A DNA stretch of 64,000 nucleotides from Mobula hypostoma (taxonomy: Eukaryota), in assembly GCF_963921235.1 (NCBI RefSeq), contig NC_086107.1, positions 104,842,001-104,906,000 of the forward strand. Reading direction: 5' to 3'. The notes beneath the pieces were generated by a model that saw only the letters and a list, made by a program, of their open reading frames with translations, was not told where the DNA came from and did not search any database. Positions within the stretch are counted from its first letter, which is position 1; each line of letters opens with the position of its first letter. Positions 24,527 through 53,761 of this stretch are shown here, in pieces. The translations under genes and the position numbers were made by a program.

Positions 24527-24621
24527 ACACACATCAAAGTTGCTGGTGAATGCAGCAGGCCAGGCAGCATCTCTAGGAAGAGGTACAGTTGACGTTTCGG
24601 GCCGAGATCCTTCGTCAGGAC
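24527..24621 (-). mobile_element. Short Penelope terminal-repeat insert with hammerhead motif
   Basis: Minus strand AGTC-CTGACGA-AGGATCTCGGCCC-GAAACGTC-AACT. Flanked by TCCAGCA at 24520-24526 and 24622-24628. Confidence 0.75.
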
Positions 24622-24787
24622 TCCAGCACCTGGTTGTATACCAGATGTGGTAAATAGATATAGGTTGGGCCCCTCTTTTTCACCCTTCAAGATTAGGCCA
24701 AATGTTCTTCTTCTGAATCATATGTTTTTCTGTAATCTCAGTATATCTGGACTTGAGAAATATGAAACCATTTTACACTGATAAATG

Positions 24788-24979
24788 CAAACAACAGGAA
24801 TTCTGCAGATGCTGGAAATTCAAGCAACATACATCAAAGTTGCTGGTGAACGCAGCAGGCCAGGCAGCATCTATAGGAAGAGGTGCAGTCGAAGGGTCTC
24901 GGCCTGAAACGTCGACTGCGCCTCTTCCTATAGATGCTGCCTGGCCTGCTGCGTTCACCAGCAACTTTGATGTATGTTG
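24788..24979. mobile_element. 192-bp fold-back Penelope-derived insert with 15-bp TSD
   Basis: TSD TTACACTGATAAATG at 24773-24787 and 24980-24994. 68-bp inverted arms at 24825-24892 and 24912-24979. Confidence 0.9.
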
Positions 24980-26021
24980 TTACACTGATAAATGTTAGTT
25001 TTCCTATCTTCATTCATGCTAGCTTATCAAAAGGCACACTTTTTAGTTTTTGAGGGCAATGTCTAGTTTCCTATCTTTGCAGTACACTGTTTAAAATATC
25101 ATTCTGCATCTAATGTTCCTGTAATTCATCTGCAGTGAATAGGTATAGTTTATTCATTTCATTTACATAACTGAAAGTGACCAGATATAGATAGAACCAG
25201 GTCAACCACTGATTTGGGACCTACCAAAATAAAAACATCATTTTTGTAGCGTCTTCTTTAACATGTTAATATTCCTTGGAAGCACTGAGAGCTAATGCAC
25301 TGAACTCATCTCTAAGACCCAAGTTCACCATCATCAGTGAAGGATTTATGTGCTCTGATTGCTGTCTTTATGTCACTTGGAAGGCATTATACACATGTTG
25401 CAAGAAAGCTTGAAGGAATCAGCATGCATGTAGTGAATATTGAGAGGTAAATTTCACAGGCTGTAAATAAAGTGAGTTCCAGAGAGGTTCTTCAGAAATA
25501 TTCTCAAACTCCCTTACAGTTAAACTGAAGTTTGAAAAAGTGAATCTCATGAACCATTTAGTTGTGCTAGCTTTTTGAGCTTTTTTAACTGATAATTCTG
25601 CCCTGTTATGTGTGCTGGTTTTCCTTTTCCAAGAAGGCAGGATATTGAATTCCATTATGAAAGTCACTAAACCTGCTCACAGCAAGCACCCAATAAGACA
25701 ATGTATCCCAGGTCGCAACAAAATGCTGCATGTGTCATCTCCCCTCTTTTTTTAAACAAATTATTTTAAATGTGCCTTTGGTTGCTGTGTGTCCATCCAG
25801 ACACTATCTACTCTAAACACTATTTGAATACTATTAACTCTTCTCATCATCCTCTGTGGAGTGTTAACCCAGCTTTTGCGGTCTCATGCCTCACCCCACT
25901 AACATTCTGCCCTTCCTACAAGGGCTTACTTAGCATCAGTTTGAAGTGTGGTCTGCTCAGAATTGAATGCAATTCTCCACTTGAACCCCAACCAACAATT
26001 GACAAGGACCAGTTCACTAAA

Positions 26022-27066
26022 TCCTCCCGCCACCCCACTAGGAATAGGGTTCCCCTCGTCCTCACCTACCACCCCACCAGCCTCCGGGTCCAACATATGA
26101 TTCTCCGTAACTTCCGCCACCTCTAACGGGATCCCACCACTAAGCACATCTTTCCCTCCCCCCCCCCCACTTTCCATAGGGATTGCTCCCTACGCGACTC
26201 CTTTGTCCATTCGTTCCCCCCCCCCCAATCCCTCCCCACTGATCTCTCTCCTGGCACTTATCCTTGTAAGCGGAACAAGTGCTACACATGCCCTTACACT
26301 TCCTCCCTTACCACCATTCAGGGCCCCAGACAGTCCTTCCAGCTGAGGCGACACTTCACCTGTGAGTCGGCTGGGGTAATATACTGCGTCTGGTGCTCCC
26401 AATGTGGCCGCCTATATATTGGCGAGACCCGACGCATACTGGCAGATCGTTCTGCTGAACACCTATGCTCTGTCCGCCAGAGAAAGCAGGATCTCCCAGT
26501 GGCCACACATTTTAATTCCACATCCCATTCCCATTCTGATATGTCTATCCACGGCCTCCTCTACTGTAAGGATGAAGCCACACTCAGGTTGGAGGAACAA
26601 CACCTTATACTCTGTCTGGGTAGCCTCCAACCTGATGGCTTGAACATTGACTTCTCTAGCTTCCGCTAATGCCCCAACTTCCCCTCGTACCCCATGTGTT
26701 ATTTATTTATTTATATACACACATTCTTTCTCTCTCTCTCTCCTTTTTCTCCCTCTGACTATACCCCTTGCCCATCCTCTGGGTTTTTTTCCCACCTTCC
26801 CTTTTTCCTTCTCCCTGCGCCTCCTGTCCCATGATCCCCTCATATCCCTTTTGTCAATCACCTGTCCAGCTCTTGGCTCCATCCCTCCCCCTCCTGTCTT
26901 CTCCTATCATTTTGGATCTCCCCCTTTCCCTCCCACTTTCAAATCTCTTACTAGCTCTTCCTTCAGTTAGTCCTGACGAAGGGTCTCGGCCGGAAATGTC
27001 AACTGTACCTCTTCCTTGAGATGCTGCCTGGCCTGCTGCGTTCACCAGCAACTTTGATGTGTGTTG
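26022..27066 (+). mobile_element. Penelope-like element, 3' part: GIY-YIG endonuclease (disrupted), pyrimidine-rich 3' UTR, terminal repeat with hammerhead motif
   Basis: Translates across frameshifts to RVPLVLTYHP...PCKRNKCYTC...FTCESAGVIYCVWCSQCGRLYIGETRR...EH...VATHFN...EEQHLI...QPDGLN* (stop 26667-26669). CTGACGA at 26973. Confidence 0.9.
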
Positions 27067-27391
27067 AGAATAACTTCCTTGTTTTGTCTTGTTTCCCTTT
27101 TGATATCTGTAAAATCAAACTTTGCAAAGGCTTTTTGAGAGCTTTCATAACTTTTCCTGCCATTGTCAAAGGTATACATTCCTAGCATCCAATTTTGAAC
27201 ATGAGCCCCCTCCCCTCACTAATACAGGTCCATAATCCCTTATCCGAAATCCTTGGGGCTGGTTGCATTTCGGAATTTAGAATTTTTCAGATTTCAGACC
27301 CCCTCTCCTCTACTCCCCCCCCCGCCGATACCAAAAAACACATATGCTCAAGTCCCTGTTTAACCTGTCTCAGTGCGGTGGACTTTAGGAC

Positions 27392-27550
27392 NNNNNNNNN
27401 NNNNNNNNNNNNNNNNNNNNNNNNNNNNNNNNNNNNNNNNNNNNNNNNNNNNNNNNNNNNNNNNNNNNNNNNNNNNNNNNNNNNNNNNNNNNNNNNNNNN
27501 NNNNNNNNNNNNNNNNNNNNNNNNNNNNNNNNNNNNNNNNNNNNNNNNNN
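27392..27550. other. Assembly gap (159 N)
   Basis: Run of N. Confidence 1.
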
Positions 27551-27807
27551 TTCAATAAAACATTAAAATATACAGCTTCAAATGAACCGAATCAAACACA
27601 TGGTAAATGACTTATTGGAATAAATGTAGAACATCACTGTCACTGTGGCTATCAAACTTCAGTAACTTGTCTTTCTGTTTATTTAAATCATTTACAGTGG
27701 TAGTTCCGACACTATTTTCTTCAGTAAGACACCGCACAGACACACCACGATCAAGCTTCTGCAATAACTCCACTTTCTGCATTATTGATAATGATGGATG
27801 CTACCTT

Positions 27808-28475
27808 TTCTTTCTTTATCTCTTTTCTTTTTCAATCTTTTTATTAGTTTCATAATGATAAACATTCCATAGTATTGATACAAAGTTGTTGGGATTACAT
27901 TGTTATGATTAACATAATTAAATATAAACCCATTTTACACATGGGTATTAAACTCCCAATCATACAGGATGCAAATGTAATATACCAAAAAAAAGGAAAA
28001 AATCATGAAAAAGGAAAAAAATATATAAAAATATACCCCAAAAGAAAAACTAACTTAAACAGTGTTAATCAACTAAACTAAGAAAAAAGACATGGGCTGT
28101 TATATAACATCAAAAAAAAGGAACCATTAAGTGTTGTCAACTCCGCTCCTCTCAACATTAGAAAAGAATAGAATGAGTTTGGAAAGGTCAAATTACATCA
28201 TATGATTATATATTGATTTACAACCTCACCCTATTACTGCAATTTTTGGGTTACTGATGATAGAATCAAGTCACTTAACCTCTTCAGCTCGTCAGATGAT
28301 TGCATTTCTTACATTAATGGCTGAAGATCCATTTTGCTGAATTGGAAAGAGATTAATCCTTCCACCACATTTCATTGGTTCTCTCAAACTACTTAGAAAA
28401 ACTTAGAAGTGTTATTTATGATCCCTCTATTAAATTTGAAAAGACTTGGAGGCCATTTATTCAACATTTTCATAT
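27808..28475 (-). mobile_element. L1-type LINE 3' end with 5' inversion, nested in the Tigger element
   Basis: T-rich tail with tttatt at the left. Inverted ORF2 C-terminal piece (PITAIFGL...IAFLTLMA) at 28206-28475. TSD GATGCT(A/T)CCTT at 27797-27807 and 28476-28486. Confidence 0.75.
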
Positions 28476-29496
28476 GATGCTTCCTTCTCTTTTTCTCATT
28501 GTTACCCATAGGGGTACCTCCAGCTCTTTTTGACATTTTCACAGTGAAATTAAACACAAAGTCAACAGTGAACACAAAATATCAGCGAAAAGCAAATGCA
28601 CGTAACCAGTACGAGCACTGAGCCACAACTGACGTCTGGCGGCCTCTGCTAGTGCTGCCCCGTCACACCTGAGTGACGTCAACTGTTGGCGAAAAAAACT
28701 TCGGTTTTCAGAGCTTTTTGGATTTCAGAATTTCGGATAAAGGAATGTCCACCTGTACTGCTTTTGAATTGTTTTGTCTCCCTGTCCTCACAAAATTTAA
28801 TTTGCTGTGCATTAATTAATTTCTGATTGTGTGTATTTTCCTGAGCTTGCATTATCCTCAAGTTTATTGCATTTTCAAACACAATTGTACTATACCTGAT
28901 CTTTCTGTTGAGCAGTTCCAATGACTTGGCATAATTTTCTGTCCTAACTTATCGTCGTCTTGTGAAAGAGGTATAAACGCTGGAGATGATTGTCTGAACT
29001 ACAGCCAAAGGAATCAATTGTTACCAGTCTGACAGAATAGATTACCTAATATTTTTAACAATTCATTTTGCACCACAGAGGTTATTCACTGTAAAGTGAG
29101 TCCATATATTGCTACTGATTTGTCCCCTCCTTCAAAGAAACTCCAAGCAAACAAACTGTTCAGATTTTTATTGGCTATTTCAGTGTAAAATCATGTCAAT
29201 TCAGTTGTTCAATGCAGAGAGAATTGGAAATTATTTGCCTGAGAAACAAAGGTTTACATTTGAGTGTCCTCCTTGAAAATGTTTTAAAATATTTTGAATA
29301 TAATTAATAATATCTGATAATATATATTGAGATAAAAAGTAAATTGTAAATTTCTTTCTAATTCAAATAATATTGTGACCGTAGTAGTTAGAGTAAATCT
29401 TCATTGATTTTGCTAGACCTTGCATGTTCTGTAGTTTCAAACTCTGACCTTTTCCTTGTTTAACATGCTGGTTCTATGTTGATCTGTGAACCTCAG

Positions 29497-29557
29497 GTAA
29501 ACAATGCCACAGCTCGTGTGATGACTAATAAGAAGATGGTGAGCCCTTATGCAAATG
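29497..29557 (+). CDS. RBFOX2: RBFOX2-like coding exon, 61 nt (VNNATARVMTNKKMVSPYAN-G)
   Basis: cctcag|GTAAAC...AATG|gtaggt. KKMV..YANG is RBFOX2-type (RBFOX1/3 have KKT...YTNG). Confidence 0.95.
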
Positions 29558-30894
29558 GTAGGTATTTTAATGATTGTACAAATGTAGCGGCCTTTTTTAA
29601 AGATTGTGTGATATTGGGATGCATTTTTTGTAGGTATTTACAGAGGAAAACAAAGAAATCCATAGAACTTTATGAAAAACTGTACATTGACAAAGACTCA
29701 GAAACAATCAATGTGCAAAAGATTACAAAAATATAATAGAACACAAGTTGTAAAGAATCCTTGAAAGTGTTGGTATAGTTTCAAGCATTGGCACAAGCTA
29801 AGCAATTCTAAATAATATGCTGCTATCTTACAGAAACAAATCTTTAATTATCCATTTTTAGTTTGTAGGCACTTGACCAATTAAGCTGCACTGAGAAGAT
29901 TTTGAAGCTTAACCTTACCGCTGTGTACGCCCTGTTTTATTTACTGCATTTGCCAATTAGACCAGCCTTGTATTAACTAGCATATGCAGAAGTACCTGAA
30001 TTTACTTGACAGAGCAATGTCCCTAGTGACTTTAGCCTAGGATTAAGAAAACTGTTGAAGAATTTCGTTTGTAATCTCTACAACTGATGCTGGGATAGCC
30101 CTGTGATGAGTGTTCAAAATTAACTGCTAAATTAGTTTAGACCAACATCTGGGGGGGGGGGGAATGTTGGGTGCTGGATGGAGAGATTTCCAGTACAAAA
30201 TCTGCAAGCGTTGATTGACCTTTCCTTGTAGATTTTTGTGGTCCAATAAAGACTTGTTCATAAGGTTGGTTGGCTTGTAATAAGCCTACAGTGAAATTAT
30301 TGCCCTTTCATTTGAAGGTCAACTGTAAAGAAAGGCCATTAAGACAACGTGTTGAGAAGCTGCTACTTCTCATGGAACTTTTTCTCTGCATTTGTATATA
30401 CCCTGAGGCAAAGTGCTTCTGAAAATAATATAGTTCAGTTTTGTTACTGGATTACTGAGTGCAGTGTTTTTAAGCAAGAAAAAATAGATTGCACTTTTAA
30501 GTAGCAGAACAGCCCAAGGCATTTCACAGGAACATTTGTCAGACAAAGATGACGCTGAGTCATATTAAAGGTATGCAGGGAAATGACCAAAAAGAAAAGT
30601 CAAAAAGTTTCTTAGAGAAAGAAAAGGAGACAGAGGGGTTTGTGGGGAAATTCCAGAGGTTAGCAATCTGCTTAACTGAATGCATGGGTGACAAAATTGA
30701 AGGACATTAATGAGATCAAAAGGCCAGAATACCTTGGAGGGTTTTCTACTGGAAGGAGATTGGGAAGTATTAGATTATGAAGAAAATGGAAAATAAATTT
30801 GTGCATTTTAAATAAATCCTTTGCTTAAATGGGAGCCAATGTAATTGGTGTCAAACAGGATTAGTGCAATGTAGGGCATAGAGAGAAGTGTTTT

Positions 30895-33140
30895 GGATGA
30901 ATTAAGATGGAGAGTGACATAGTTAATTCAGAAACAAAGGTTCTGAACTTAAAGAAGGGTAACTTTGAAGGTATGAGATGTGAATTAGCTAAGATAGACT
31001 GGCAAATGATACTTAAAGGGTTGACGGTGGATATGCAATGGCAAGCATTTAAAGATCGCATGGATGAACTACCACAATTGTTTATCCCAGTTTGGCAAAA
31101 GAATAAACCAGGGAAGGTAGTGCACCCGTGGCTGACAAGGGAAATTTGGGATAGTATCAATTCCAAAGAAGAAACATACAAATTAGCCAGAAAAAGCGGC
31201 ACATCTGAGGACAGGGGAGAAATTCAGAGTCCAGCAGAGGAGGACAAAGGGCTTAATTAGGCAAGGGAAAAAAGATTATGAGAGAAAGCTGGCAGGGAAC
31301 ATAAAAACTGACTATAAAAGCTTTTATAGATATATGAAAAGAAAAAGATTGGGTAAGACAAATGTAGGTCTCTTACAGTCAGAAACAGGTGAATTGATCA
31401 TGGGGAACAAGGACATGGCAGACCAGTTGAATAACTGCTTTGGTTCTGTCTTCACTAAGGAGGACATAAATAATCTTCAGGAAATAGTAGGGGACCGAGG
31501 GTCTAGTGAGATGGAGGAACTGAGGGAAATGCATGTTAGTAGGGAAGTGGTGTTAGGTAAATTGAAGGGATTAAAGGCAGATAAACCCCCAGGGCCAGAT
31601 GGTCTGCATCCCAGAGTGCTTAAGGAAGTAGCCCAAGAAATAGTGGATGCATTAGTGATAATTTTTCAAAACTCTTTAGATTCTGGACTAGTTCCCGAAG
31701 ATTGGAGGGTGGCTAATGTAACCCCACTTTTTAAAAAAGGAGCGAGAGAGAAACCGGGGAATTGTAGACCGGTTAGCCTAACATCGGTGGTGGGGAAAAT
31801 GCTAGAGTCAGTTATCAAAGATGTGATAACAGCACATTTGGAAAGCGGTGAAATCATCGGACGAAGTCAGCATGGATTTGTGAGAGGAAAATCATGTCTG
31901 ACGAATCTCGGACTTTTTTGAGGATGTAACTCGTGGATAGGGGAGAAACGGGATGTGGTATATTTGGATTTTCAAAGGGCTTTTGACAAGGTCCCACACA
32001 GGAGATTAGTGTGCAAACTTAAAGTACATGGTATTGGGGGTATGGTATTGATGTGGATAGAGAATTGGTTGGCAGACAGGAAGCAAAGAATGGGAATAAA
32101 CGGGACCGTTTCAGAGTGGCAGGCAGTGACTAGTGGGGTACCGCAAGGCTCAGTGCTGGGACCCCAGTTGTTTACAATATATATTAATGACTTAGACGAG
32201 GGAATTAAATGCACCATCTCCAAGTTTGAGGATGACACAAAACTGGGCGGCAGTGTTAGCTGTGAGGAGGATGCAGGGTGACTTGGATAGGTTAGGTGAG
32301 TGGGCAAATTCATGGCAGATGCAATTTAATGTGGATAAATGTGAAGTTATCCACTTTGGTGGCAAAAACAGGAAAACAGATTATTATCTGAATGGTGGCC
32401 GATTAGGAAAAGGGGAGGTGCAACGAGACCTGGGTGTCATTATACACCAGTCATTGAAAGTGGGCATGCAGGTACAGCAGGCGGTGAAAAAGGTGAATGG
32501 TATGCTGTCATTCATAGCAAGAGGATTCGAGTACAGGAGCAGGGAGGTACTACTGCAGTTGTACAAGGCCTTGGTGAGACCACATCTGGAGTATTGTGTG
32601 CAGTTTTGGTCCCCTAATCTGAGGAAAGACATTCTTGCCATAGAGGGAGTGCAAAGAAGGTTCACCAGATTGATTCCTGGGATGGCAGGACTTTCATATG
32701 ATGAAAGACTGGATAGACTAGGCTTTATACTCACTGGAATTTAGAAGATTGAGGGGGGATCTTATTGAAACGTATAAAATTCTAAAGGGATTGGACAGGC
32801 TAGATGCAGGAAGATTGTTCCCGATGTTAGGCAAGTCCAGAACGAGGGGTCACAGTTTAAGGATGAAGGGGAAGCCTTTTAGGACTGAGATGAGGAAAAA
32901 CTTCTTCATGCAGAGAGTGGTGAATCTGTGGAATTCTCTGCCACAGGAAACAGTTGAGGCCAGTTCATTCGCTATATTTAAGAGGGAGTTAGATATGGCC
33001 CTTGTGGCTAAAGGGATCAGGGGGTATGGACAGAAGGCAGGTGCAGGGTTCTGAGTTGGATGATCAGCCATGATCATACTGAATGGTGGTGCAGGCTCGA
33101 AGGGCCAAATGGCCTACTCCACCTATTTTCTATGTTTCTG
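30895..33140 (+). mobile_element. CR1-type LINE, 5'-truncated
   Basis: ORFs 30907-33054 with [50 protein letters not shown]. Tail ttctatgtttctgtg. Confidence 0.94.
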
Positions 33141-33548
33141 TGAATTCGGTTGAACTGTGAAGAATGTGGATGTCTGACTGTGAAGGCTGAAATAGTGAAG
33201 TCTTATGACATGGTACCAAAGGCATGGATGAGGCTTTCACTGGCAAATTAAGGGAGAGTTGGAATCAAACAATTCAGACTGGTTAGACTGTCTTTTTGAT
33301 GGCACTGATATGCAGTCAAAACTTTATCTCATGTCATATTTCAGATAGAACATAGAAAACCTACAGCACAATGCAGGCCCTTCGGCCTACAATGCTGTGC
33401 CAAACTTGTACTTTAGAAATTACCTAGGGTTACCCATAGCCCTCTATTTTTCAAAGGTCTACGTACTTACCCAAGAGTCTATTGAAAGACTCTATAGTAT
33501 CTGCCTCCACCACCATCGCTGGCAGCCCATTCCACGCACTCACCACTC

Positions 33549-33583
33549 TCCTGACGAAGGGTCTCGGCCTGAAACGTCGACTG
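33549..33583 (+). ncRNA. Minimal type I hammerhead ribozyme motif (core intact, stem I truncated)
   Basis: CUGACGA core, stem II GGGU-CUCG-GCCU, GAAA, palindromic ACGU stem III, GUC cleavage triplet (C33578). Activity unproven. Confidence 0.65.
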
Positions 33584-33680
33584 CGCCTCTTCCTATAGAT
33601 GCTGCCTGGCCTGCTGCGTTCACCAGCAACTTTGATGTGTGTTGCTTGAATTTCCAGCATCTGCAGAATTCCTGTTGTTT
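33551..33680 (+). mobile_element. 130-bp Penelope terminal-repeat insert beginning exactly at a hammerhead core, 15-bp TSD
   Basis: TSD GCACTCACCACTCTC at 33536-33550 and 33681-33695. The insert starts CTGACGA-AGGGTCTCGGCCT-GAAACGTC-GACT. Confidence 0.9.
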
Positions 33681-34051
33681 GCACTCACCACTCTCTGCGT
33701 TTTTAAAAAAAACTTACCCCTGACATCTCCTCTGTACCTACTTCCAAGCACCTTAAAACTGTGCCCTCTCGTGTTAGCCATTTCAGCCCTGGGAAAAAGT
33801 CTCTGACTATCCACGATCAATGCCTCTCATCATCTTACACACCTCTATCAGGTCACCATTCATCCTCCGTCGCTCCAAGGAGAAAAGGCCAAGTTCACTC
33901 AACCTATCCTCATAAGGCATGCTCCCCAATCCAGGCAACATCCTTGTAAATCTCTGCTGCACCCTTTCTATAGTTTCCACATCCTTCCTGTAGTGAAGTG
34001 GCCAGAACTAAGCACAGTACTCCAAGTAGGGTCTGACCAGGGTCCTATATA

Positions 34052-35430: not shown

Positions 35431-35741
35431 TAGCTGTAACATTACCTCTCAGCTCTTGAACTCAGTCCCACGGTTGATGAAGGACAATACACCGTATGCT
35501 GCTTTAACCACACAGTCAACCTGTGCAGCAGCTTTGAGTGTCCTATGGACTCAAACCCAAAGATTCCTCAGATCCTCTACGCTACCAAGAGTCTTACCAT
35601 TAATATTATATTTTACCATCATATTTGACCTACCAGAATGAACCAGCTCACACTTTTCTGGGTTGAACTCTGTCTGTCACTCCTCAGCCCAGTTTTGCAT
35701 CCTGTTGATGTCCCGCTGTAACCTCTGATAGCCCTCTGCAC

Positions 35742-35932
35742 CAGGGGTCCCCAACCTTTTGCGCACCGCGGACCAGTTTAATATTGACAATATTCTTGCC
35801 GACGGTGGGGTGGGGGGGGTGTTCAAGTTCAACAGTGCGTGACGGGGAATGAGGAAAGGTGCAGCTGACTCATACCGTTTCGTATCGCCAAATCATATCA
35901 TTTCTGCGTGGCCCGGTGGTTGGGGACTACTG
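35742..35932. mobile_element. hAT/Charlie-like MITE
   Basis: TIR CAGGGGTCCCCAACC / GGTTGGGGACTACTG. Degenerate 8-bp flanks ctctgcac / ctgtacat. Confidence 0.7.
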
Positions 35933-37424
35933 CTGTACATTATCCACAACACCCCCAACCTTTGTGTCATCAACAAATTTACTAACCCATCCCTCCACTT
36001 CCTCATCCAGGTCATTTATAAAAATCACGAAGAGAAGGGGTCCCAGAACAGGTCCCTGAGGCACACCACTGATCACCGATCAAAAATGTAGAATTTCTGA
36101 CTCGGCTCCAAATATATGTGACAGGGAGGGATGGGGTCAATGGCTAAGTGTAAGCAGAGAGTGCTGAAAATGATCGTCAATTCTTCAAGGAAATTTCTCA
36201 TAGGCTATATCAAGTTGTGAACAACTAATGTTGCAAAGACAGGAGTTAAAGTGTGCATTGATGTTTACAGAGCTGAAGAGGAGGAAAGTGATTTCTGTGG
36301 AATATTAATGAATTTACAAATTTCAGGTAACTCACTCCCTCCTTTTCTGATTCCACCTGTCACTCACCTGCCGTCCTTTGTATCTAAAATAAGCCCTGCT
36401 CTTCCCCACCTGGCTCCATCTGCCCACCATGCCATATCTCCTCCACCCTTTCACACCCACCACTCTGTAACAGTCTCCTTCCCACCATATACTACACATT
36501 ACCAGTCCCTATTCAGGGTCCTGACCCAAAGCATAGACTATTCACATGCTGCTTGACTCACTGAGTTCTTTCAGCAATTGTTGCTGAGTGTAACAATAAT
36601 GGTGGAGGAGGTGAGCTAACTGAGATTTTGGATGATAAATGATAGGTCCTCGGAAGAAGTCAGAGGAAATAGTGCAAAAGATGGAAGCCTTTGCTAGATT
36701 CACTTGCTGTGATTGGATAGGTAAGAAAAGTACCTGCTCCTAGACTATCAACAAGTGCAAATTTTGGAACAGAAGGTGTAGTCAAAAAATTCCATACAAA
36801 TTAAGGAAAAAAATTTTCATTACAATCGTATATGGTATCGTGAATGACTTTAATCGGAGACATTTTCATCTCTGGTGCAAGTAGTAAACTAATTTAGACA
36901 GTTCCAGATAGACTGCAATACATTCAGGTACTTTGGGTACGAAAGGGAGGTTGGAGATGGGTGGTAGTTTGCAAAGATGGGAATTAAATGAGTTTTCTGA
37001 TTATTAAAGGGCTGAAGAGGAAATTGGTGTCTGTGGAATATTAATGAGAATAGGGACAAGTAAAGTCTGCAGTTTGAGGTTGGAGGGAAACTAAGGATCA
37101 CTCTGCAGGTTAGGGGAAGCGAAGGGTAGCCATGAGGCTACTGATGTGTCATAAACATGGGAATTGAAAATTTGAATGTGTGCCATGAATATAGATAATT
37201 TTGAACAATAATGCCAGTCATTGTGATGTAGCCATTTAGCACATCAGTATCTGGAATATTAGCTGAAATTAGCTGATATAGTTACTATATTTCTTTAAAA
37301 AGCAGTTGCATGCAACAGAGTGCAAAGTAAATATGATCCCAAGTGTAAAGGGGACTGATGAGGAAGGTCTAGAATAACTGAAGTGTTGAAAAGGGGGTTG
37401 TTTTAACAAGGTATTTATTATTAT

Positions 37425-39600
37425 AAGACTGTAAGACATTGGAGCAGAATTAGGCCATTTGGCCCATCAAGTGTGCTCTGCCATTTCATCATAACTGATC
37501 CATTTTTCCTCTCAGCTCCAATCTCCTGCCTTCTCCCCGTATCCCTTGATGCCCTGACCAATAAAGAATCTATCAACTTCTGCTTTAAATGTACATAAAA
37601 ACATGGCCTCCACAGCTGCCTGTGGCAACAAATTCCACAGATTCACCACTCTCTGGCTTAAGAAATTACTCCTAATTTCCATTCTAAAAGGATGCCGCTC
37701 TATTCAGAGGCTGTGTCCTCTTGTCCTAGACTCTTCCACCACAGGAAACGTCCTCTCCACATCCACCCTATCAAGGCATTTCAACATTTGATAGGTTTCA
37801 GTTACAACATCCCACATTCTAGTGAATACAGGCAAAGAGCCATCAAACGCTCTTCATATGACAAGCTGTTCAATCGTGGAATCATTTTTGTGAACCTCTT
37901 CTGAACCCTCTCCAGTTTCAGCACATCCTTTCTAAGATAAGGGGCTCAAAACTGCTCACAATAGTCCAGCAGAAGGCTGATGTATGCTTGTGTGTCAACT
38001 CGATGGAGTAGGTACGGCATCGCCGCAAACCTTACACGGATCCCTACGCCGTAGCCTGATGCGCACCTCTTCCAAAATGTAACTACACGTCGCAGCAACA
38101 CAGACCGCAACAACTGTGATTGGTCCGCCTGGTAGCATCGCATTTCCTCCTATGCTGCAATAGCTTCCCATTGGGCAACTGAAGAGCAGGGAAGGAACTC
38201 TGGCTGCAATGCTTTCCATAAAGCTTTACAGACCTCCAAAATTATGGAGGACACACTTCGCTTTTACTAAAAAGACGCTCGCTTTAAACTTGCTTACTTC
38301 GAGAAAGACTACCATGACCATGAAGCTTTGAGCGGGCAGGTGTGTGCGCATGCGCGACATGCCTGAATTGCAGAGCGACGCAGACACATCAATGCACAAT
38401 TATAAATGCTCACAATGCACGTAGGCCACTTGCGTAGGTTATGGCGTCAAGTTGACGCACAAGTATAAATCAGCCTTGAGGCTTCACTAGTGCTTTATAA
38501 AACCTCAACATTGCGTCCTTGCTTTTATATTCTAGTCCTCTTGAAATAAATGCTAACATCACATTTACCTTCCTCACCACAGACCTGACCTGCAAATTAA
38601 CCTTTAGTGAATCCTGCACAAGGACTCCCAAGTCCCTTTGCACCTGAGATTTTGGAATTTTCACTCCATTTATATAGCCTACCCCTTGATTTCTTCTACC
38701 AAAGTGCATGACCATACACTTCCCAGCACTGTATTCCATCTGCCACTTCTTTGCCCATTCTACTAATCTGTCTGAATCCTTCTTTAGCTTTTCTACTTCC
38801 TCAAAACTACCTGCCCCTCCTGCTATCTTTGTATCATCTGCAAATTTGCAACAAAGCCATCGATTCAGTCATCCAAGTCATTGACATATAAAAGAAGCGG
38901 TCCCAACACAGACCCCTGTGGAACAGCACTTTGTCACTGGCAGACAACCAGAAAAGGCTCCCTTAATTCCCATTCTTTGCCTCCTCCCAATCAGTCAATT
39001 CTTTATCCATGGTAGTATGTTTTCTGTAATACCATGGGCTCTTAACTTTTTAAGCAGCCTCATGTGTGGCACCCTGTCAGACGTCTTCTGAAAATTCACG
39101 TACATAGCATCAACCGGTTCTCTTTTGTTTAACTTGTTATTTCTTAAAAAATAACTCCATTAATCTTGTCAGGCAAGAAATTCCCTTGAGGAAATATGCT
39201 GACAATGGCCTATTTTATCATGTGCCTCCAAGTACCCCAAAACCACATCCTTAACAATTGACTCCAACATCTTCCCAACCACTGAGGTCATACTAAATGG
39301 CCTGTGATTTATTTTCTTCTGCCTCTTTTTTTGAAGAAAGGAGTGATGTTTGCAATTTTCCAGCCTTCTAGAACCATTCCAGAATGAAGTGATTCTTGAA
39401 AGATCATTACTAATGCCTCCACAATCTTTTCAGCCACCTCTTTCAGAACTCTGGGGTGTACACCATCTGGTCAAGGTGACTTATCTACCTTCAGACATTT
39501 CAGTTTCCCTAGAACCTTCTCCCTAGCAATGGCAAATTCACACACTTCTGACCCCTTATGCTCTGCAACTTCCACCATATTACTAGTGTCTTCCACAGTG
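37425..39600 (-). mobile_element. CR1-type LINE fragment, decayed, interrupted by a MITE
   Basis: Tail ataagactgtaagac. KCMVMHFGRRN, VQRDLGVLV and LKVDKSP on the minus strand. Confidence 0.87.
37974..38476. mobile_element. 503-bp non-autonomous TIR element, probably PIF/Harbinger
   Basis: TIR AGGCTGATGTATGCTTGTGTGTCAACT / AGTTGACGCACAAGTATAAATCAGCCT. 3-bp flanks aga / tga. Interrupts the CR1. Confidence 0.75.
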
Positions 39601-44645: not shown

Positions 44646-44679
44646 AATAGTTCCATGAATTTTTGGCAGAGTTATAAAT

Positions 44680-47470
44680 TTTAAAAATGGCGGAGAAATT
44701 CAACAAATATTTTGTGTCTGTATTATTGGAAGAAATCAGTTGGGGGAGCAGATGATGATGAAATATATCTGTAGAGTGAACAAAGAACTCTAAAGAAACT
44801 AGATTTAGTTTTAAAAGGTGAAATTACTAGGACCACAAAGCAATAAATCTCCATTACCTGATGATCTGCTTTATTGAGTTTTGAAGTGGCTATGGAGATA
44901 AATTAGTTGTCATCTTCAAAAGTTCCATAGGTCCCAGTGTGGTTCCCAAAGACTGAGAGGTCACAAATTTAATTCCACTTTTTAAGAAAGGAGATAAAAA
45001 AAGAAAATAGGTGACATAACCAGTTAGCCTAATATCCGTAGCAGAGAAAATGCTGGAATCTATTGTTAAGAAAGTGGTAACGTGACTCTTGAAAATTTTT
45101 TTAAAATTATATTTATTCATGAAACGTGGTAGTAACTAGCAGAATAAATAAGGGAAATTAAATTGGTATGCATTGGGACTTTTAAAGGGCTTTTATCACT
45201 CGAGATTATTAAACGTGGTATTTGGAAAGAAATATTTGTATGAATGGAGGTTTGGTTAAAGACAGAAAATGGAGTTCATGTGGTTTGTTTGGACTTTCTG
45301 AAGTTCTTTAATAAAGTGCAGCTCACAATCGTGGGGGAAAAAAGAGTGGCATAGTGTTCGAATAAAGTGTTGGTGTAGATTGTGGAATTGTGGATTGAAC
45401 AACAGATAAAGAAGTAGGAATTAACAGAGTCAGGTTTAATATCACTGGCATATGTTGTGAAATTTGTTGTTATGTGGCAGCAGTACAATGCAGTGTATAT
45501 TAAAACTAAATTACAGCAAGAAATGTATGTGTGTGTGTATATGTCTTATGTGTGTGTGCTCCCTGATGGTAGCAATAAGAGAATGACATGTTCTGGGTGA
45601 TGGTGACCCTTAATGGTGAGTGCTGTCTTTTTGAGAAATTGTTCTTGGGAAGATGTACTGGATGCCACGGAGGCTAGTGCCTACGAAGGAGCAGACTGAG
45701 TTTGCAACCTCCTGCAGCTTATTTTGATCTTGTGCAGTACCCCCCCCCCATACTAGATGGTGATACAGCCAGTTAGAATTCTATCCACTGTATATCTGTA
45801 GAAACTTGCAAGTGTCTTGGCTGTCATACCAAATCTCCTCAAACTCCTAATGAAATAATGAAATACAACCACTTTCATGCCGCCTTTGTAATTGCATCAT
45901 TATGTTGGGTCCAGGATAGGTCCCCAGAGATGTTGACACAAAGGTACCTAAAATTGTTCACCCTTTCCACTTCTGATCCTTTGATGAGGACTGGTGTGTT
46001 CCCTTGTCTTACATATTCTGAGGTCCACAATAAATTTTTTGGTCTACTGACAAGTGTAAGGTTGTTGCTCAACAGTTGATCTATCTCGCTCCTGTATGTC
46101 TTCTCAGCACCATCTGACGTTCTGCCAACAATTGTTGAGTCATCAGCAAATTTATAGATGATATTTAGGCAGTGCCTAGCCACACAGTCATGGGTGTAGA
46201 GAGAGTAGAGCTGTGGGCTAAGCACACATCCTTGAGGTGCACCAGTGTTGATTATCAGCAAGGTGGGGATGGTATTTCCAATCTACACAGACTGGTCTTC
46301 CAGTTGCAGAGGGAGGTACAAAGGCCCAGATTTTGGATCTTTTTGATCAGAATTGTAAGAATGATTGTGTTAAACGCTGAGCTGTAGTCAATGAACAGTA
46401 GCCTGACGTAAGTATTAGTATTGTCCAGGTGATCCAAGGTCACACGAAGAGCCAATGAGATCACATCTGCTGTAGACCTATTTTGGCAATAGGCAAGTTG
46501 CAGTGGGTCCAGGTCCTTCCTTTGGCAGGAGTTGATTCTAGCCATATCAAACCTCTCAGAGCACTTCACCATAGATATGAGTGCTATTAGACAATAGTCA
46601 TGAAGGCAACTCACCCTGTTCTTCTTGGACATTGTTATGATTGTTGCACTTTTGAGGCAAGTGGGAACTTCGGACTATAGCAATGGGAGATTGAAAATGT
46701 CTTTGGTTGGCACAGGTTTTCAGAGCCCTACCAGGTATACCGTTGGGGCCTGTTGCCATGCGAGTGCTCACTCTATTGAAAGATGTTCTGACACCAAGAC
46801 AGAGATCTCAGTCATTTTTGGATTGAAAGACAACACCTAATGGGATGTTGTTGAAACTGGTGTTGATGCTGCAGCTGTTCTATCTGTATCAATGAGTTGG
46901 ATGAGGAGATCAAATATAAAACATGCAAGTTCAGTGAGGATCACAAGACCAAAATACAAAGCTGGGTAACAGTGTATGCCAGTGTAAGAGGGTGGAGAGT
47001 TTTCAGTGCACAGGGCCAAGCTAAGTGAACGGAAGAAGACATGGCAGATGGAATAATGTGACAGAATGTTAAATTGTTTATTTTAGTAGATAAGGAGGTG
47101 CCTGATGAATAATTTTGAAGTCTTCTACTTTGGTAGAAGAAGTAGAAAGTGGGAGAAATCATGAGACGTGAGTGTCCTTGTACATAAATTGTTTGAGAGG
47201 TAACATGCCAGTATATGCAAGCTTTTAGAAAGGCAGACAAATGTTGACCTTCTTTTGACTTTTGAGTGCAAGAGTAATAATAACATCATTTTGTTGCAAC
47301 TTTATGGACCCCATTTGGAATCTTGTCCACAGGTGAAGTTTCTCTACCTGGGTAGAGATAGGTACCCTTGTAGTGATACAGTAATTGCTCAGATTGGGTG
47401 TAGAAGAGGGCCTGAAAGCCTCGTGAAGAAAGAGTAAGCATTCTGGGCCTACATCTTCAGCTTGGAATAA
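44680..47470 (+). mobile_element. Heavily decayed CR1 fragments flanking a Rex1-type insertion
   Basis: Residual motifs ccactttttaagaaagga, ccagttagcctaatatc and aaaatgctggaatc match the CR1 at 31720-31810. Confidence 0.55.
45428..46800 (-). mobile_element. Rex1/Babar-type LINE RT fragment
   Basis: [41 protein letters not shown] and KFADD (ORFs 46255..46632 and 45875..46261). Confidence 0.88.
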
Positions 47471-47699
47471 GATTATGTTTGATAATCTTTCATTGCTGTG
47501 TTATTGATGAGTTCAGTGAAAAACTCTCCGTATTGCAACTAGGGAAATCTATTGATTTCTTTGCAGTAGGAAACTACTTGGCTAAAACAGAATTATGGCT
47601 GAATTACAGAAAGCCCCATCTGTTGTCATTTCTGTGTGGCTGCCACCATGCCTGTGGGAGGGATGGCTCTGTCAAAACAAATCATGAAAGTGCTGATCA

Positions 47700-48560
47700 A
47701 GAACTTTGTCTGAGGCATATTTGTGGAAGGCTATTAAAGGAAGCTGGTAATGAGGGATGCCTTGGAAGTGAATTCTATGACATGGAAACAAATGTGGTGG
47801 GAGTGACTGCAGCTACTTCAGGGCATCTCATATCACTGGGGGGCCCTTTGTTGGAGCCATCTTGAAGAGACAGCACTAATTGTTTGACAAAGTAATTGGT
47901 GGAAGTTTACTGCATCATTTGGCCAAGAAGATCTTCAGTCAACATGATTGTCTCTTTACATCAACCTTAATGTACAAGCAACAGCAAATACAATATTTTG
48001 CTTTTCTGGATTTCACCAATGCATTTGACACCTTGAACAGAATGGAACTCTCCCATATATCTAGAGGTTTCTGGGTCTCAATCGTTCGTTTCATGACAAC
48101 TGCCATGCCACTATACAATTTGATGACTTAATTTCTGTTTGTTTTGAGATGTAAATGGAGTGAAGCTATCTTTTGACTCTTTTGTTTGATTTCTTTTTCT
48201 CTGTACTCCCGACTTGCACTACATTAGGGTCTTGCCCATCATCTTCTCCCATACCGTAACTGACAAGAAAACTCATGATACAACAAACTGTTGTATCATA
48301 CTCAGAGTCTGAGCATACAATCAATACATTTTACTGTATTGGGTTCATTGTGACAGATTGTTGATGATGAAAAATTCAGTGTGGGAATTGGGACGGTTGC
48401 CAATAACTTGGTTCATTTAATAAAACTGGCAAGGAAGAATAACAAACTCACATTTAAGAAAAGGATGCCAATCTACAAGGTCTGCATTCTTAGCATGTTG
48501 CCAGGTGGTATACACTGCTTTCTGACCCAAGCTGTAATTCTTTGGTTGACTTGCCACCGT
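47700..48560 (+). mobile_element. Very old RTE-like RT remnant
   Basis: YFAFLDFTNAFDTLNR in ORF 47880..48131 resembles the RT motif xFxDxxKAFD. Confidence 0.4.
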
Positions 48561-49277
48561 TTGTATAGCTCTCTTGCACAGAATTCTCTCCCATGGCTTG
48601 CCACATTCCCAGCTTCCTTTATAACTCTTCCTCAAACATACCTCTGACCAATTTCTAGATCAGCCTTTTCAATATTTGTTAGTGATAATATGCCTATATG
48701 TACCATACTAGGACACTTGATACTTATTTCAAACACTCTGAAAAGCATTTTGTATTTGGAAGTCATAGCAACCATCTGTGTATAGAAATTAAATTCGCAA
48801 ACATTTACTTATTTGTTTTTACTCCCTGTCTGTTCCCTATCTTCCTCTCCTAATTGCATTGCCTCTTTTGCTGGAGTGCAGTTCCAAAGGTATTAATCAC
48901 ACTCTATAACTTGCCTCAGGTGCCGTGGCAGGTAGCAGCATTTGACCACCAGAACATGACCAAGCAGCTTGTGTGAACCTGATAGTGAATGTCAGTAGGC
49001 AGCTCCCGTACTTGTGCAGAGTTTGGATGGTTTTGCTTTATATAACTCAAGGATACTGAGAGCTCTGGTGTTCAACCACAAATATTGGGCATTTTTTTTC
49101 ATCCATGTGGTTAAAGTTGCTTTTAGAAAGCTATATAAGATAGATTAATTGGTAGACCAACATCTGTCAGAATCTGTAGGTATTCTGATTTGTTTATTGT
49201 AACTATTTTTGGGTACTCAGCATTAAGCTCAAATTACAGCTTGATGTCGCCACCATTTAATGTGCATTTGCATTTAA

Positions 49278-49379
<102 letters not shown>

Positions 49380-49839
49380 TAAAGAAGTCTCAACTAGGAT
49401 TCTATGTTTCCTTATATTTCTATCTCTGTTTCTATTCACTTACTACATTGTACCTTTGAATCAATCTGAGAGAAAAAAATTAGTAAATTTGTCACTAAAA
49501 TTTGTTTTCTGTTTTTGAGAATGTTGCACTTCAGTAGATTCACATATGATTTTAATCCATTTTGAATGTGGATCTGTGACAGATTTTCCATCCGTAGATC
49601 AGGCTTCTGATATCAGTACAGAGAGCCCAGGCTGGGACGAGTATGCGGGCAGTGGGCAAAATATCCCTCTAGTGTTTGTAGATCTCGTACTGGAGATGCA
49701 GTATCACTTCACCCTGCCACTTTGTTTTTGACCCACTTTGTCATCACCTCAGTCTCTGACATGCCTTTATTGGGATCTTTCTCCTCGCTAACCTCTGTTC
49801 TGGAGTTTAAATTAAAATAGTGGAGTTATTGCCTATGGA

Positions 49840-51190
49840 TAGTGTTTTGTGGGGAGGGTTATAGGGAATGGGTGCTGTGATGATCTGGAGGTTGTGCAGT
49901 AGTTACTTAAGGGGTGTTGTGAGGGACAGGCCCAGGGGTAGAGTTAGATAATAGGGGTGGAGGATTCACAGTGAAGGGGGGTGGGGTGGCAACTAGCATC
50001 GTGGGGGGGCGGGGTTTCTGCAGGATCTCGCAGTAGGGGGGAGGGCTGAAAGAGTAACAGAACTGCTGGTGATATTAGGTGAATTTGGCCCCTTGGTGGG
50101 TGAGGGCTTGGGATTATGGGGATGCATAGGAGGGTTGGAGGTGTTCGGCTTAGGGGTATGGCTGTGGGATGGGGCTGCGGGACATTGCGGTGGAAGGAGG
50201 GATTGAAAGAGCACCCAAGCTGATGGTGGAGTGGGGTGTGAGAGGGGATGGTGGGGGTCGGTGTTACATACGCCCCTTTGTGGGGTCTGGCTTGGGTTAT
50301 TTGGGGTGCTGTCCGGTTTAGTTGGGTTGTGCAGTCCATTGGAAATTAGGATTAGGGTGAAGTGTAGGGTTGGGGATGTTTATGGGGTGGCGTGATACTG
50401 GTGATGTGGGGTGAACCTGGCTCCCTGGTGGGGAGAGGGCCCGGGTTTATGGGAGAGTATAGGAGGGTTGGAGGTATTAGGATTAGGGGTATGGCTGGGA
50501 GGTGGGGCTGCGGGACATTGTGGTGGTGGGAGTGGTTGAAAGAGCACCCAAACTGATAGTGGAGTGGGGTGCGAGAGAGGATGGTAGGGGCCAGTGTTAC
50601 GTAAGCCCCTTTGTGAGGTCTAGCTTGGGTTATTTAGGGTGCTGTCTGGTTTAGTTGAGGTGCGCGGTCCATTGGAAGTTAGGATTTGGGTGAAGGGTAG
50701 TGTTGGGGATGTTTGTGGAGTGGCGCAGGTAGTGTTAGACTGGTACTGTGGGGTGAAGTTGGCTCCCTGGTGGGGAGGGGGCTCGGGTTTATGGGGGTGT
50801 GCAGGAGGTTTGGAGGTGTTAGGCTTGGGTAAATGGCTGGGTGGTGGAGCCACTGGACCTTGCAGTGGTGGGAGGAGTTGAAAGAGCACCCAAACTGATG
50901 GTGAAGTGGGGTGAACTTGGCCCCCTGATGGAGAGAGGGCTCAGGTTTATGGGGGTGTGTAGGATGGGTGAAGTTGTTATGTTTAGGGATAGGGTGGAGG
51001 AATGTGGATGCAGGCCTCCCCATGGGAGGGGGAGGAAGAGGAAAAGGAGCATGGGGCCCAGCGTTAAGTAGGCCCCTTAGTGGAGGTGTGGCCAGGGTTA
51101 ATTGGTGCATTGTCCACTTCAGTTGGGGTGTGTGGCCCTTCGGATGTTAGGGTTAGGTTGGGGGAGGTAGGGTCGAGGGATGTCCACTGG
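49840..51190 (+). repeat. G-rich region with ~335-340-bp imperfect tandem repeats (~3 copies)
   Basis: The anchor GAAAGAGCACCCAA recurs at 50205, 50538 and 50880. Many GGG/GGGG runs. Confidence 0.85.
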
Positions 51191-53622
51191 GTACATGGTT
51201 TAAGTAGTAACTGATGGTATCCCAAATTTAAATAAGATAGACTTATGGCAGTTTTTGTTGACCACTGAAATCAAAAGAACATTTTGTTCTTTTGTTTGCT
51301 TGGTTTTATTTTAATCCTAGAAACTTAATTTCTTTAGCTTCTGTAGAAACTTTCATCCTCTGCCCCAAAAAGAAATACAGTGGATTCTGGCTAATTGGGC
51401 CATCAGTTAATCGGGGTGGTCACTTATTTGGGTTAACTCTTAAAGAACAAAAACTAATGGAGAAAATAGCTGGGATTTCCTTTGATTATTTGGGACACTA
51501 TGCCGCCTTATTGGGACAAGAGACTTGCCAAACATTTTCTAACTAGTGTCTGTTGCATGCACTTGTATGGCCATGCGTGGAACAGACAGTTTTTAATAGT
51601 TTCAGTTGTATGTGTTTGTGTTCAAAAAATCAGTGATATTTGCCACTGATCATTGGTAAGAAAAAATTTGAAGGTAAACTGAATTATCAGTTAAGATTTT
51701 TGAATAATCTGTTACTGTCTTCAGATGGAGGCATATAAAACTGAATCTTGGCATGTGACCATGGGTTCAACTTAAAAAAGCATTCTAAAATAAGGATACA
51801 AGGCTAGAGCTGTTTGGGAGGGTTTAAACTAATTTGGCAGTGGGGTGGGAACTGGAGTGATGGTACTGAGGATGAGGTAGTTGCTTTGCGAACAGAGGCA
51901 GTGTATAGTGAGACTGCTAGCAAGAAGAGGCTGATGATGGGGCAGAATTGCAGTCAACAGGATGAGTTGCATTGTAAAAGGCAGACAAAATCAAAAAGGA
52001 TGAATACAGGACTGAAGGTGTTATATTTGAATGTACGCAGTATACAGAAAAAAGTAGATGAATAAGGAAGATTTACAGATTGGTCTGTATGATGTTATGG
52101 GCATCACTGAATCATGGCTGAAAGATTATAGCTGGGTGCTTAACACCCAAGGAACATATTGTATCGAAAGGACAGGCAGGTAGGCAGAGGGGCTGACATA
52201 GCTGTATCGGTAAAAAATTAAATAGTTAGAAAGAGGTAACATAGGGGCAGAATGTGTTGATTTAATGTGCATAGAGCTAAGAGACTGTAAGGCTAAAAAG
52301 ACCCTGATGGGAGTTATATACAGACCCCGCAAAAAGTAGTAAAGATGTAATTTACAAGTTACAGCTGGAGATACAAAACACATGTCAAAAGGGCAGTGTT
52401 TTGGGGAATTTCAATATGGAGGTAGATTGGAAAAATCAGGTTGGTGTTGGATCCCGAGAGGGGGATTCTCTAGAATGCCTATAACATGGTTTTTAGAACA
52501 GCTAGTGGTTGAGCCCACTAGGGATCAGCTATTCTGGATTGGGTGTTGTACAGTGAACTGGAATTGATTAGAGAGGAACACTGGAAAAGTGAACATAATA
52601 TGATAGAATTCACCCTGTAATTTGAGAAGACACTATAGTCAAATGTATCAGTATTACAGTGTAGTAAAGGGAATTACAGAGGCATGAGAGAGGACCTGGC
52701 TAAAATTGATTGGAGAAGGACACTGGCAGGGATGACGACAGAGCAGCAATGGCTAGAATTTCTGGGAGCAACTCAGAAGGTGCAGGATATATACATTCCA
52801 AACAGGAAGAAGTGTTCTGAAGGCAGGATGACACAGCCATAGCTAATGAGAAGTCAAAGCCAACATAAAAGCCAAAGGGAGGGCATATAATAGAGCAAAA
52901 GTTAGTGGGAAGTTTGAAGATTGGGAAGCTTTTTTAAAAAAAAAAGTAACTAAAAAAAGTCATTTTTTTTAAAAATGAAAAGACGGAATAGGAAGGTAAA
53001 CTACCAATAATACTAAAGCAGGTACTAGAAGTTTCTTCAGATATATAAAGTGTAAAAGAGAGGTGAGAGTAGATATTGGACCGCTGGAAAACCTTGCCAG
53101 CTAGGAAGACAAGGAAAAGATGGACAAACTGAGTAAGTATTTTGCATCAGTCTTCACTGTGGAAGTCATTAGCAATATGCCAGAAGTTTGAAGAGTGTCA
53201 GGGCAGAAATGTGTGAAGTTGCCATTAACAGGGAGAAGGTTTGTGGGAAACTGAAAGTTTTGAAGATAGATAAGTCACCTGGACCAAATGGTAGATGCCC
53301 CAAGGTTCTAAAAAAAAAAGTGGCTGAAGAGATTGTAGAGGCATTAGTTATGATCTTTCAAGATTCAATTGATTATGGCATGGTTCTGGAGGAATGGGAA
53401 ACTGCAAATATCACTCCACTCTTCAGGAAGGCCATAGGGGCAGAAGAATGGAAATTACAGGCCAGTTAGTCTGACCTCAGTGGCTGAGAAGATGTTGGAG
53501 TTGATTGTTAAGCATGTGGTAACAGGGTGCTTGGAGGCACATGGTAAAATAGGCCATAGTCCACATGGTTTCCTTAAGGGAAAATCATGCCTAACAAATC
53601 TGGAATTATTTGAGGAAATAAC

Positions 53623-53761
53623 CGTTCAGTTCTGATGAATGGTCTCAGCCCGAAACATCAACTGTTTACTCTTTTCCATAGACACTGCCTGGCCTGTGAG
53701 TTCCTCCAGCGTGTTATGTGTGTTGCTTGGATTTCCAGCATCTGCAGGTTTTCTCTTGTTT
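53623..53761 (+). mobile_element. Penelope terminal-repeat insert (older subfamily) with degenerate hammerhead
   Basis: CAGTT-CTGATGA-ATGGTCTCAGCCC-GAAACATC-AACTG. Interrupts the CR1 RT. Confidence 0.75.

Follow-up and report, generated by a model that had tools for sequence, protein, structure and literature searches.

The 64-kb window analysed here, a stretch of contig NC_086107.1 of the ray Mobula hypostoma, contains several copies of a unit of approximately 100–135 bases that carries a hammerhead-like motif, and one of these copies closes a Penelope-like element (PLE). The question raised by this locus is what the units represent. A first-pass annotation of the sequence had proposed that those standing alone are a young non-autonomous, retrozyme-like family equipped with its own ribozyme and mobilised by the PLE. 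From the evidence described below we think it probable that they are instead the 3′-terminal module of an endonuclease-bearing PLE of this ray genome, and that they are dead by-products of that element and not members of a self-propagating, ribozyme-headed family.

Repeat units in the window

We searched the 64-kb window by blastn with four of the units noticed on first reading, and with an nhmmer profile built from six aligned arms. Six copies of the unit, distributed over five places, are recovered at the coordinates first given, with E-values from 1e-35 to 1e-47, and neither program finds any other strong match in the window. The copies and the features attached to them are as follows.

24527–24621, − strand: solo unit, older, short form without tail; starts with (A)GUC in its own orientation (matches from 24519 or 24527)
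24788–24892, − strand: minus arm of a fold-back, long form with a 36-nt tail; predicted G1.1 at 24890
24890–24979, + strand: plus arm of the fold-back, short form without tail; starts at C7/G8 inside the core
24773–24787 (left) and 24980–24994 (right): perfect 15-bp target site duplication (TSD) of the fold-back
25964–26964, + strand: body of a dead, 5′-truncated PLE, with a GIY-YIG frame and a CT-rich 3′ untranslated region (UTR)
26965–27066, + strand: hammerhead and terminal module closing that PLE, short form (blastn, nhmmer)
33551–33680, + strand: solo unit, young, long form, 130 bp, with a perfect 15-bp TSD
53627–53761, + strand: solo unit, old, long form, inside a LINE reverse-transcriptase pseudogene; start ambiguous (matches from 53623 or 53630)

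Four older relics had also been suggested, of which the first two below are statistically detectable and the last two are seen only by eye.

10910–10984, − strand: decayed relic of hammerhead and tail from another PLE family, changed at the G8 position (nhmmer E = 9e-6)
14875–14945, − strand: decayed relic of hammerhead and tail (nhmmer E = 5e-4)
24132–24206, − strand: very decayed possible relic (nhmmer E = 1)
36496–36585, + strand: very decayed possible PLE 3′ end (no profile match)

By blastn the 33551 copy and both arms of the fold-back are young copies that are 98–99% alike, the 24527 and 26965 copies are 95% identical to each other, and the 53630 copy, at 74–78% identity to the others, belongs to an older subfamily. 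The two young insertions, namely the fold-back and the 33551 copy, have the bases GGCCT, CTGCGCC and CTATAG in common, and the PLE-attached 26965 copy lacks them. This distribution is one of the points in favour of a separate family, and the shared bases had been offered as evidence for it, but they establish only that there is a young subfamily; a younger full-length PLE subfamily elsewhere would explain them equally well.

Four of the six copies lie within 2.6 kb (24519–27066) and represent two subfamilies of different age. PLEs are reported to be prone to insertion beside earlier copies (PMC6765202), and the clustering seen in this small sample fits that habit. The 26965, 33551 and 53630 copies and the plus arm of the fold-back are on the sense strand, with two antisense arms, numbers that are too few for a strand bias to be judged.

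The attached Penelope-like element

The link between the unit and a PLE is observed directly at 25964–27066. A single frame at 25968–26669, with one in-frame stop at 26124–26126, corresponds to a PLE linker and GIY-YIG endonuclease. That one copy ends a GIY-YIG PLE, as first proposed, is supported by a Pfam GIY-YIG match just below the cut-off (E = 7e-4, 20.3 bits against 22.6), by phmmer with this frame against 1.8 billion representatives (5403 relatives, best E = 2.5e-75), and by tblastn with eight PLE proteins of 379–927 residues, of which only the C-termini align, to 25968–26831. NCBI assembly GCA_030144855.1 contains the two best phmmer relatives, with 76–81% identity. The window copy retains no more than the last ~230 residues, and the telomerase-like reverse transcriptase part is absent because the copy is 5′-truncated; a full-length relative (P0006) carries RVT_1, as a weak match. 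Judged by its sequence, then, the element is a 1.1-kb 5′-truncated dead PLE. Its CT-rich 3′ UTR at 26670–26964 leads directly into the hammerhead at 26965, which places the unit 296 nt after the stop codon.

There are no further PLE coding pieces in the window. Outside it, the ends of a 3.3-kb Logan contig with a full open reading frame (47% identity) contain no recognisable hammerhead, and a skate locus (NCBI GCA_028641065.1) has only decayed units.

The PLE-attached hammerhead is bracketed by a 15-nt direct repeat (26952–26966 and 27006–27020; 13 of 15 positions identical, TA[G/C]CTCTTCCTT[C/G]AG). Both repeat copies resemble 3′ splice acceptors, with a pyrimidine tract followed by AG, and the upstream one ends a few bases from where the solo units begin. 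In Drosophila virilis, the 5′ edge of helix I in Penelope coincides with the end of an intron (PMC4209133). The repeat around the hammerhead may be due to chance in a CT-rich UTR.

The hammerhead motif

The minimal hammerheads described from PLEs are of type I and have no helix III loop; they carry CUGANGA and GAAA boxes, a palindromic 15.2–16.2 segment and one unpaired base that separates A9 from 10.1 (PMC4209133). These features are present to differing extents in the individual copies. The CUGANGA and GAAA boxes, in type I order, and C17 are found in all four full copies, and the extra A between A9 and 10.1 and the GAA at G12–A14 in six of six aligned segments; of the relics, the one ending at 10984 is changed at G8 and the one ending at 14945 keeps its CUGANGA box. 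The palindrome ACGU takes the place of helix III in two of the four full copies (24527 and 33551) and also in the plus arm of the fold-back, with AUGU in the 26965 copy and ACAU in the 53630 copy. Helix II has 4 bp and a CUCG loop. Helix I has 3–5 bp, that is four in the 26965 copy, three in the 24527 copy and five in the 53630 copy (three of which may be target DNA), and the 33551 copy is without its 5′ strand.

Positions C3–A6, A9 and G12–A14 are invariant even in relics of other families, at a mean column identity of 73%, and the register of the helices is specific, as 77% of cells are paired compared with 17–48% when the partner is slid. Taken copy by copy, these traits support the original assignment to the minimal, helix-III-less type I hammerhead of PLE terminal repeats, and the motif fits the published PLE form, for which cleavage after C17, as a dimer, would be predicted.

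Every copy has at least one lesion, again as first noted. There is a C–A mismatch at 2.1/1.1 in the 24527 and 26965 copies; the palindrome is broken in the 26965 and 53630 copies; the 33551 copy has no helix I 5′ strand, and the plus arm of the fold-back has no C3–A6. The pair at 10.1/11.1 is not Watson–Crick in three copies, being G–U in 33551, G–G in 26965 and U–C in 53630, and an intact G10.1–C11.1 pair, described in the literature as highly conserved, is present in the 24527 copy alone. As position 11.1 lies within a CpG, decay of this pair after insertion is plausible.

Two further lines of evidence that might have strengthened the assignment are negative. A formal count over the copies in the window gives no compensatory double changes in the helices and no excess over shuffled alignments; the covarying stem I (CAGTT/AACTG) put forward in the first-pass annotation is a single case, of which the CAG may be target DNA. 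The Rfam search that had been suggested as a check was run on the whole window and on two 91-nt slices, and its hammerhead models give no match at the gathering score or at E ≤ 10; the sole sub-threshold matches are microRNA models that respond to the hairpin shape of the fold-back. We take the cause of this failure to be the missing helix III; for the minimal hammerheads of PLEs, Cervera and de la Pena had to resort to a relaxed descriptor made for the purpose (PMC4209133).

On these grounds one could suppose that the resemblance to a hammerhead is fortuitous and that the unit is merely the end of a PLE without a ribozyme. The Rfam result, the lack of significant covariation in the window and the fact that no copy has all of the expected features would agree with this, as would the match of a loose descriptor to a LINE coding region at 9404. 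We nevertheless find the idea barely credible, as the core boxes are invariant across diverged families and relics where the rest drifts, and as two specific published traits, the ACGU palindrome and the additional base that follows A9, stand outside the core-box descriptor. Moreover, the motif lies in the PLE end, exactly where it is reported in the PLEs examined, and the lesions are mostly transitions at CpG sites, as expected from decay after insertion.

The additional site found near 9404 (− strand) with the loose CUGANGA...GAAA descriptor was rejected as a chance match, as it lies in the FADD box of a LINE reverse-transcriptase pseudogene. The string CUGAUGA...GAAA at 9380–9410 (−) even has a 4-bp stem between its boxes, and calls for caution in motif scans. 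The two long units, folded as single strands, are no more stable than shuffled sequences (z = −0.03 and +1.09), and the idea of a structured tail is therefore without thermodynamic support.

3′ ends, target site duplications and the fold-back

Two different 3′ ends are observed. Three copies end at ...GTGTGTTG, and the other three extend for 36 nt more, to ...GTTGTTT. An optional 3′ ‘tail’ of 30–40 bp has been described in PLEs (PMC8557442), and Frangieh et al. traced the tail to two adjacent internal start sites of reverse transcription (PMC11167929). The 36-nt difference between the short and long forms matches the published tail.

The two young insertions proposed earlier are borne out by their perfect 15-bp TSDs, at the fold-back as listed above and at 33536–33550 and 33681–33695 for the 33551 copy. 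One of their targets is an AT-rich site and the other is not. The 24527 copy has just a possible TSD of 4–7 bp (TCCAGCA). A single complex insertion joining this copy to the end at 27066 was considered and rejected, as there is no convincing TSD.

Retained TSDs and unit-length remnants with fixed borders would also be produced if the solo units were terminal repeats left after recombination between the direct repeats of a full-length PLE, in the manner of solo LTRs. We regard this as highly improbable: the ‘pseudo-LTRs’ of PLEs are themselves variably truncated, so that fixed borders are not expected (PMC8557442), a repeat of 130 bp gives recombination little to act on in two very young insertions, and no full-length copy is found in the window. 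Nor could recombination yield a fold-back of the same young subfamily.

The fold-back (24788–24979) consists of two arms that are 99% complementary over 68 nt, separated by a 19-nt loop, and it has the tail on one arm only. Its RNA is predicted to form a hairpin of −149 kcal/mol (z = −21). The minus arm has its inner end 0–2 nt past the site of predicted hammerhead cleavage, and the plus arm, which begins at C7/G8, is without C3–A6; the junction between them is a 3-nt CGA microhomology. This geometry fits a template RNA that had been cut by the hammerhead, as judged from one case. Frequent 5′ truncation and adjacent inverted, 5′-truncated copies are known features of PLE insertions (PMC8557442), and a fold-back with a tail on one arm matches this published arrangement together with the extension of both strands reported for the Anolis element PAc discussed below.

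At the skate locus mentioned above (L002), a decayed hammerhead at 2084–2140 (−) is preceded by an inverted piece of tail, which suggests the same fold-back habit in another batoid genome. In the ray the fold-back amounts to a near-perfect intronic hairpin of 192 nt, which gives sub-threshold Rfam matches to mir-1253 (46 bits against 103) and mir-3926 (45 against 82). Small-RNA processing could act on it, and there is a risk of its being miscalled by annotators.

5′ ends of the solo units

The solo units begin close to one another. The 33551 copy starts at C3, or at C2.1 if its TSD is read as 14 bp, and the 24527 copy starts at (A)GUC, 3–4 nt before C3. The start of the third can be read in two ways: either a 5-bp TSD flanks an insert that begins with CAGUU at 53627, or a decayed 8-bp TSD (53622–53629 and 53762–53769) flanks an insert that begins at 53630, 2 bases before C3. 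The empty site for this unit is provided by a paralogous LINE copy at 39132–39136. We lean towards the start at 53627, with CAGUU inside the insert, because older relics hold their own (C/T)(A/G)GUU, written (C/T)(A/G)GTT in the DNA, at the position of the CAG. Our first reading, in which the CAG before the 53630 copy was target DNA, was withdrawn as unproven, and both readings stand. The LINE family concerned is represented in the window by three decayed copies with a reverse-transcriptase frame, at 53300–54100, 38779–39443 (−) and 31626–32233.

The two long-form solo copies share the same 3′ end base, which defines a discrete unit of 130–135 bp, and no detectable copy in the window is truncated within the tail or downstream of the cleavage site. 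It had been considered that the solo copies might be random 5′ truncations of full PLEs. This is not so, as there are three independent starts no more than 5 nt apart; the 5′ ends pile up at the hammerhead edge and the truncation is therefore not random. At the same time, in at least two of the three solo units most or all of the 5′ strand of helix I lies outside the insert. As inserted, the solo units are therefore without a complete ribozyme.

Origin of the units

The following sequence of events would account for most of these observations, with the enzyme steps taken from published work on PLEs. The module comprises a minimal type I hammerhead followed by ~65 nt in the short form or ~100 nt in the long form. 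By analogy with PAc of Anolis, the stretch downstream of the hammerhead would be the RNA segment to which the PLE reverse transcriptase binds and on which it begins synthesis. The PLE enzyme would make every copy through target-primed reverse transcription, with staggered nicks giving rise to the TSDs, and the start of cDNA synthesis at either of two internal sites ~36 nt apart would give the short and long 3′ ends. Synthesis would then either run far upstream, as in the 1.1-kb copy at 25964–27066, or end at the 5′ edge of the hammerhead, as in the three solo units. In the case of the fold-back, both nicked strands would prime on PLE RNA, one cDNA ending no more than 2 nt from the cleavage site and the other inside the core, and the two would be joined through the 3-nt microhomology. 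We infer that the solo units are short products of this same reaction, and a reason for their preferred 5′ end has likewise to be inferred. Cervera and de la Pena found most minimal hammerheads to be single and ‘probably related to truncated PLEs’, with opposite-strand pairs 100–700 bp apart (PMC4209133).

Several observations weigh against this proposal. The three independent solo starts lie no more than 5 nt apart and 0–5 nt before C3, at the 5′ edge of the ribozyme, and a model of premature stopping alone does not predict such a shared end. The silence of the Rfam hammerhead models, and the restriction of an intact G10.1–C11.1 pair to the 24527 copy, count on the same side. Finally, a full-length PLE of the young subfamily is absent from the window, so that the source of the young copies is not seen.

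We found no published account of solo 5′ ends piling up at the edge of a ribozyme. The common end could reflect the start of the template RNA at that point or a pausing of the enzyme. One version of the former is that the hammerhead and tail form a discrete template unit, the RNA having its 5′ end at the ribozyme edge (set by the start of transcription, or by processing within the PLE terminal repeat). Copying by the PLE enzyme from the first of its start sites past that end would then yield a complete ‘strong-stop-like’ copy of ~130 nt. We consider this version unlikely. If it is true, the 5′ pile-up is the trace of a step in the PLE cycle that has so far gone unnoticed, or else of a SINE-like lineage of rays that depends on the PLE; in any case, should the non-random 5′ end be confirmed genome-wide, it would set limits on the start of PLE template RNAs or on the stopping point of the enzyme.

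The same pile-up favours the alternative from which the analysis set out, that the solo units are a distinct non-autonomous SINE-like or retrozyme-like family with its own sources, whose RNA starts at the hammerhead and which uses the PLE enzyme in trans. The solo copies, three independent insertions that represent at least two subfamilies, begin 0–5 nt before C3, both long-form copies end at the same base to give the discrete 130–135 bp, and in the window no copy has its truncation point downstream of the cleavage site; in addition a 2026 preprint argues for a derivation of animal retrozymes from PLE terminal repeats and includes monomers (10.64898/2026.07.22.740005). Because of that link between retrozymes and PLEs and the preprint's counts of monomers we keep the retrozyme idea as a minority reading, and rate it as unlikely. 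The sample is only three copies, and a fixed 5′ end may arise equally from the template RNA's own 5′ end or from an enzyme pause. With part or all of the helix I 5′ strand missing, the units have an incomplete ribozyme.

Comparison with the non-LTR retrozymes of animals (PMC7229834; Li et al. 2026 preprint, 10.64898/2026.07.22.740005) is also instructive here. Those elements are likewise short and non-coding with a type I hammerhead, probably depend on a PLE enzyme, are related in sequence to PLE terminal repeats, and include dispersed monomers, some of them in introns. However, they form head-to-tail arrays of two or more units of 150–450 bp, their hammerheads are canonical with helix III and loop–loop contacts (PMC7229834), and they are expressed as unit-length linear and circular RNA, whereas the units here are solitary, 95–135 nt long and mostly without helix I, and carry the minimal PLE motif. 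Neither nhmmer nor Tandem Repeats Finder detects tandem or dimeric copies in the window. The absence of a tandem arrangement, the non-canonical hammerhead and the small size of the units thus speak against the retrozyme-like family as originally proposed.

On the PLE by-product interpretation, which we prefer, this locus provides a well-preserved example, in a cartilaginous fish, of published PLE insertion behaviour: within a single stretch of 3 kb it would show reverse transcription from two start sites (the tail), both strands serving as primers (the fold-back), and new copies placed beside older ones. Such cases help annotators not to miscall similar units as new ribozyme elements, microRNA hairpins or retrozymes.

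Comparison with known hammerhead-bearing elements

To our knowledge this ray PLE family has not been individually described before. Its units share with the minimal hammerheads of PLEs (PMC4209133) the type I topology, the CUGANGA and GAAA boxes and the unpaired base next to A9, as well as the lack of a helix III loop, a palindromic 15.1–16.1 stretch (ACGU) suited to dimers and the location in the PLE end. Helix I, of 4–5 bp in the published motif, has 3–5 bp in the ray copies that possess both of its strands. In both cases the genomic copies are mostly solitary, with some opposite-strand pairs. They differ in that helix II here has 4 bp and a CUCG loop, compared with 7–8 bp in the Schistosoma families, and in that G10.1–C11.1 is intact here in one copy only. 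Cleavage of minimal hammerheads as dimers is credited to Lunse et al. 2016 as cited in PMC6765202, and the PLE hammerhead has been published as weak, dimer-dependent or protein-assisted, and dispensable in vitro.

A mechanistic parallel can be drawn with PAc, a Poseidon-type PLE of Anolis carolinensis (Frangieh et al. 2024, PMC11167929), which also has two start sites whose spacing equals the 30–40-bp tail. These sites lie ~85–120 nt downstream of the hammerhead cut site in PAc, and at ~67 and 103 nt here. The PAc enzyme cleaves and extends both DNA strands, which explains fold-backs, and its hammerhead is dispensable for insertion in vitro. The PAc hammerhead differs from that of the ray element in overlapping the start of the reading frame; in the ray, ~300 nt separate the stop codon from the hammerhead, and the unit contains no start of a frame.

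The SINE-like elements Sm-alpha and Sj-alpha of schistosomes, as they are cited in PMC6765202, resemble the ray units in being short, dispersed retroposons that bear a hammerhead. In that account their hammerhead is canonical and active and lies behind an internal promoter, whereas no promoter is evident in the units here.

Host gene and other features of the window

Peptides of RBFOX-type RRM exons are detected by six-frame probes near 5412, 12560, 21579 and 29503, all on the + strand, which puts the units in introns of an RBFOX-family gene. We consider it very unlikely that the intronic hammerheads cut the host pre-mRNA: the sense copies are solitary and damaged, with kilobases between them, and their hammerheads are mostly without helix I. 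The doubt already voiced on first reading about activity in situ is thus upheld, all copies being lesioned.

One assembly gap interrupts the region.

27392–27550: run of 159 N, in no unit

It begins 326 nt past the end of the nearest unit (26965–27066) and contacts no unit, TSD or PLE reading frame, and no result depends on it; its flanks have no second copy in the window. Further downstream, at 50078–50913, there is a G-rich tandem repeat with a period of 333 bp (2.5 copies, 82% matches), which is unrelated to the hammerhead unit.

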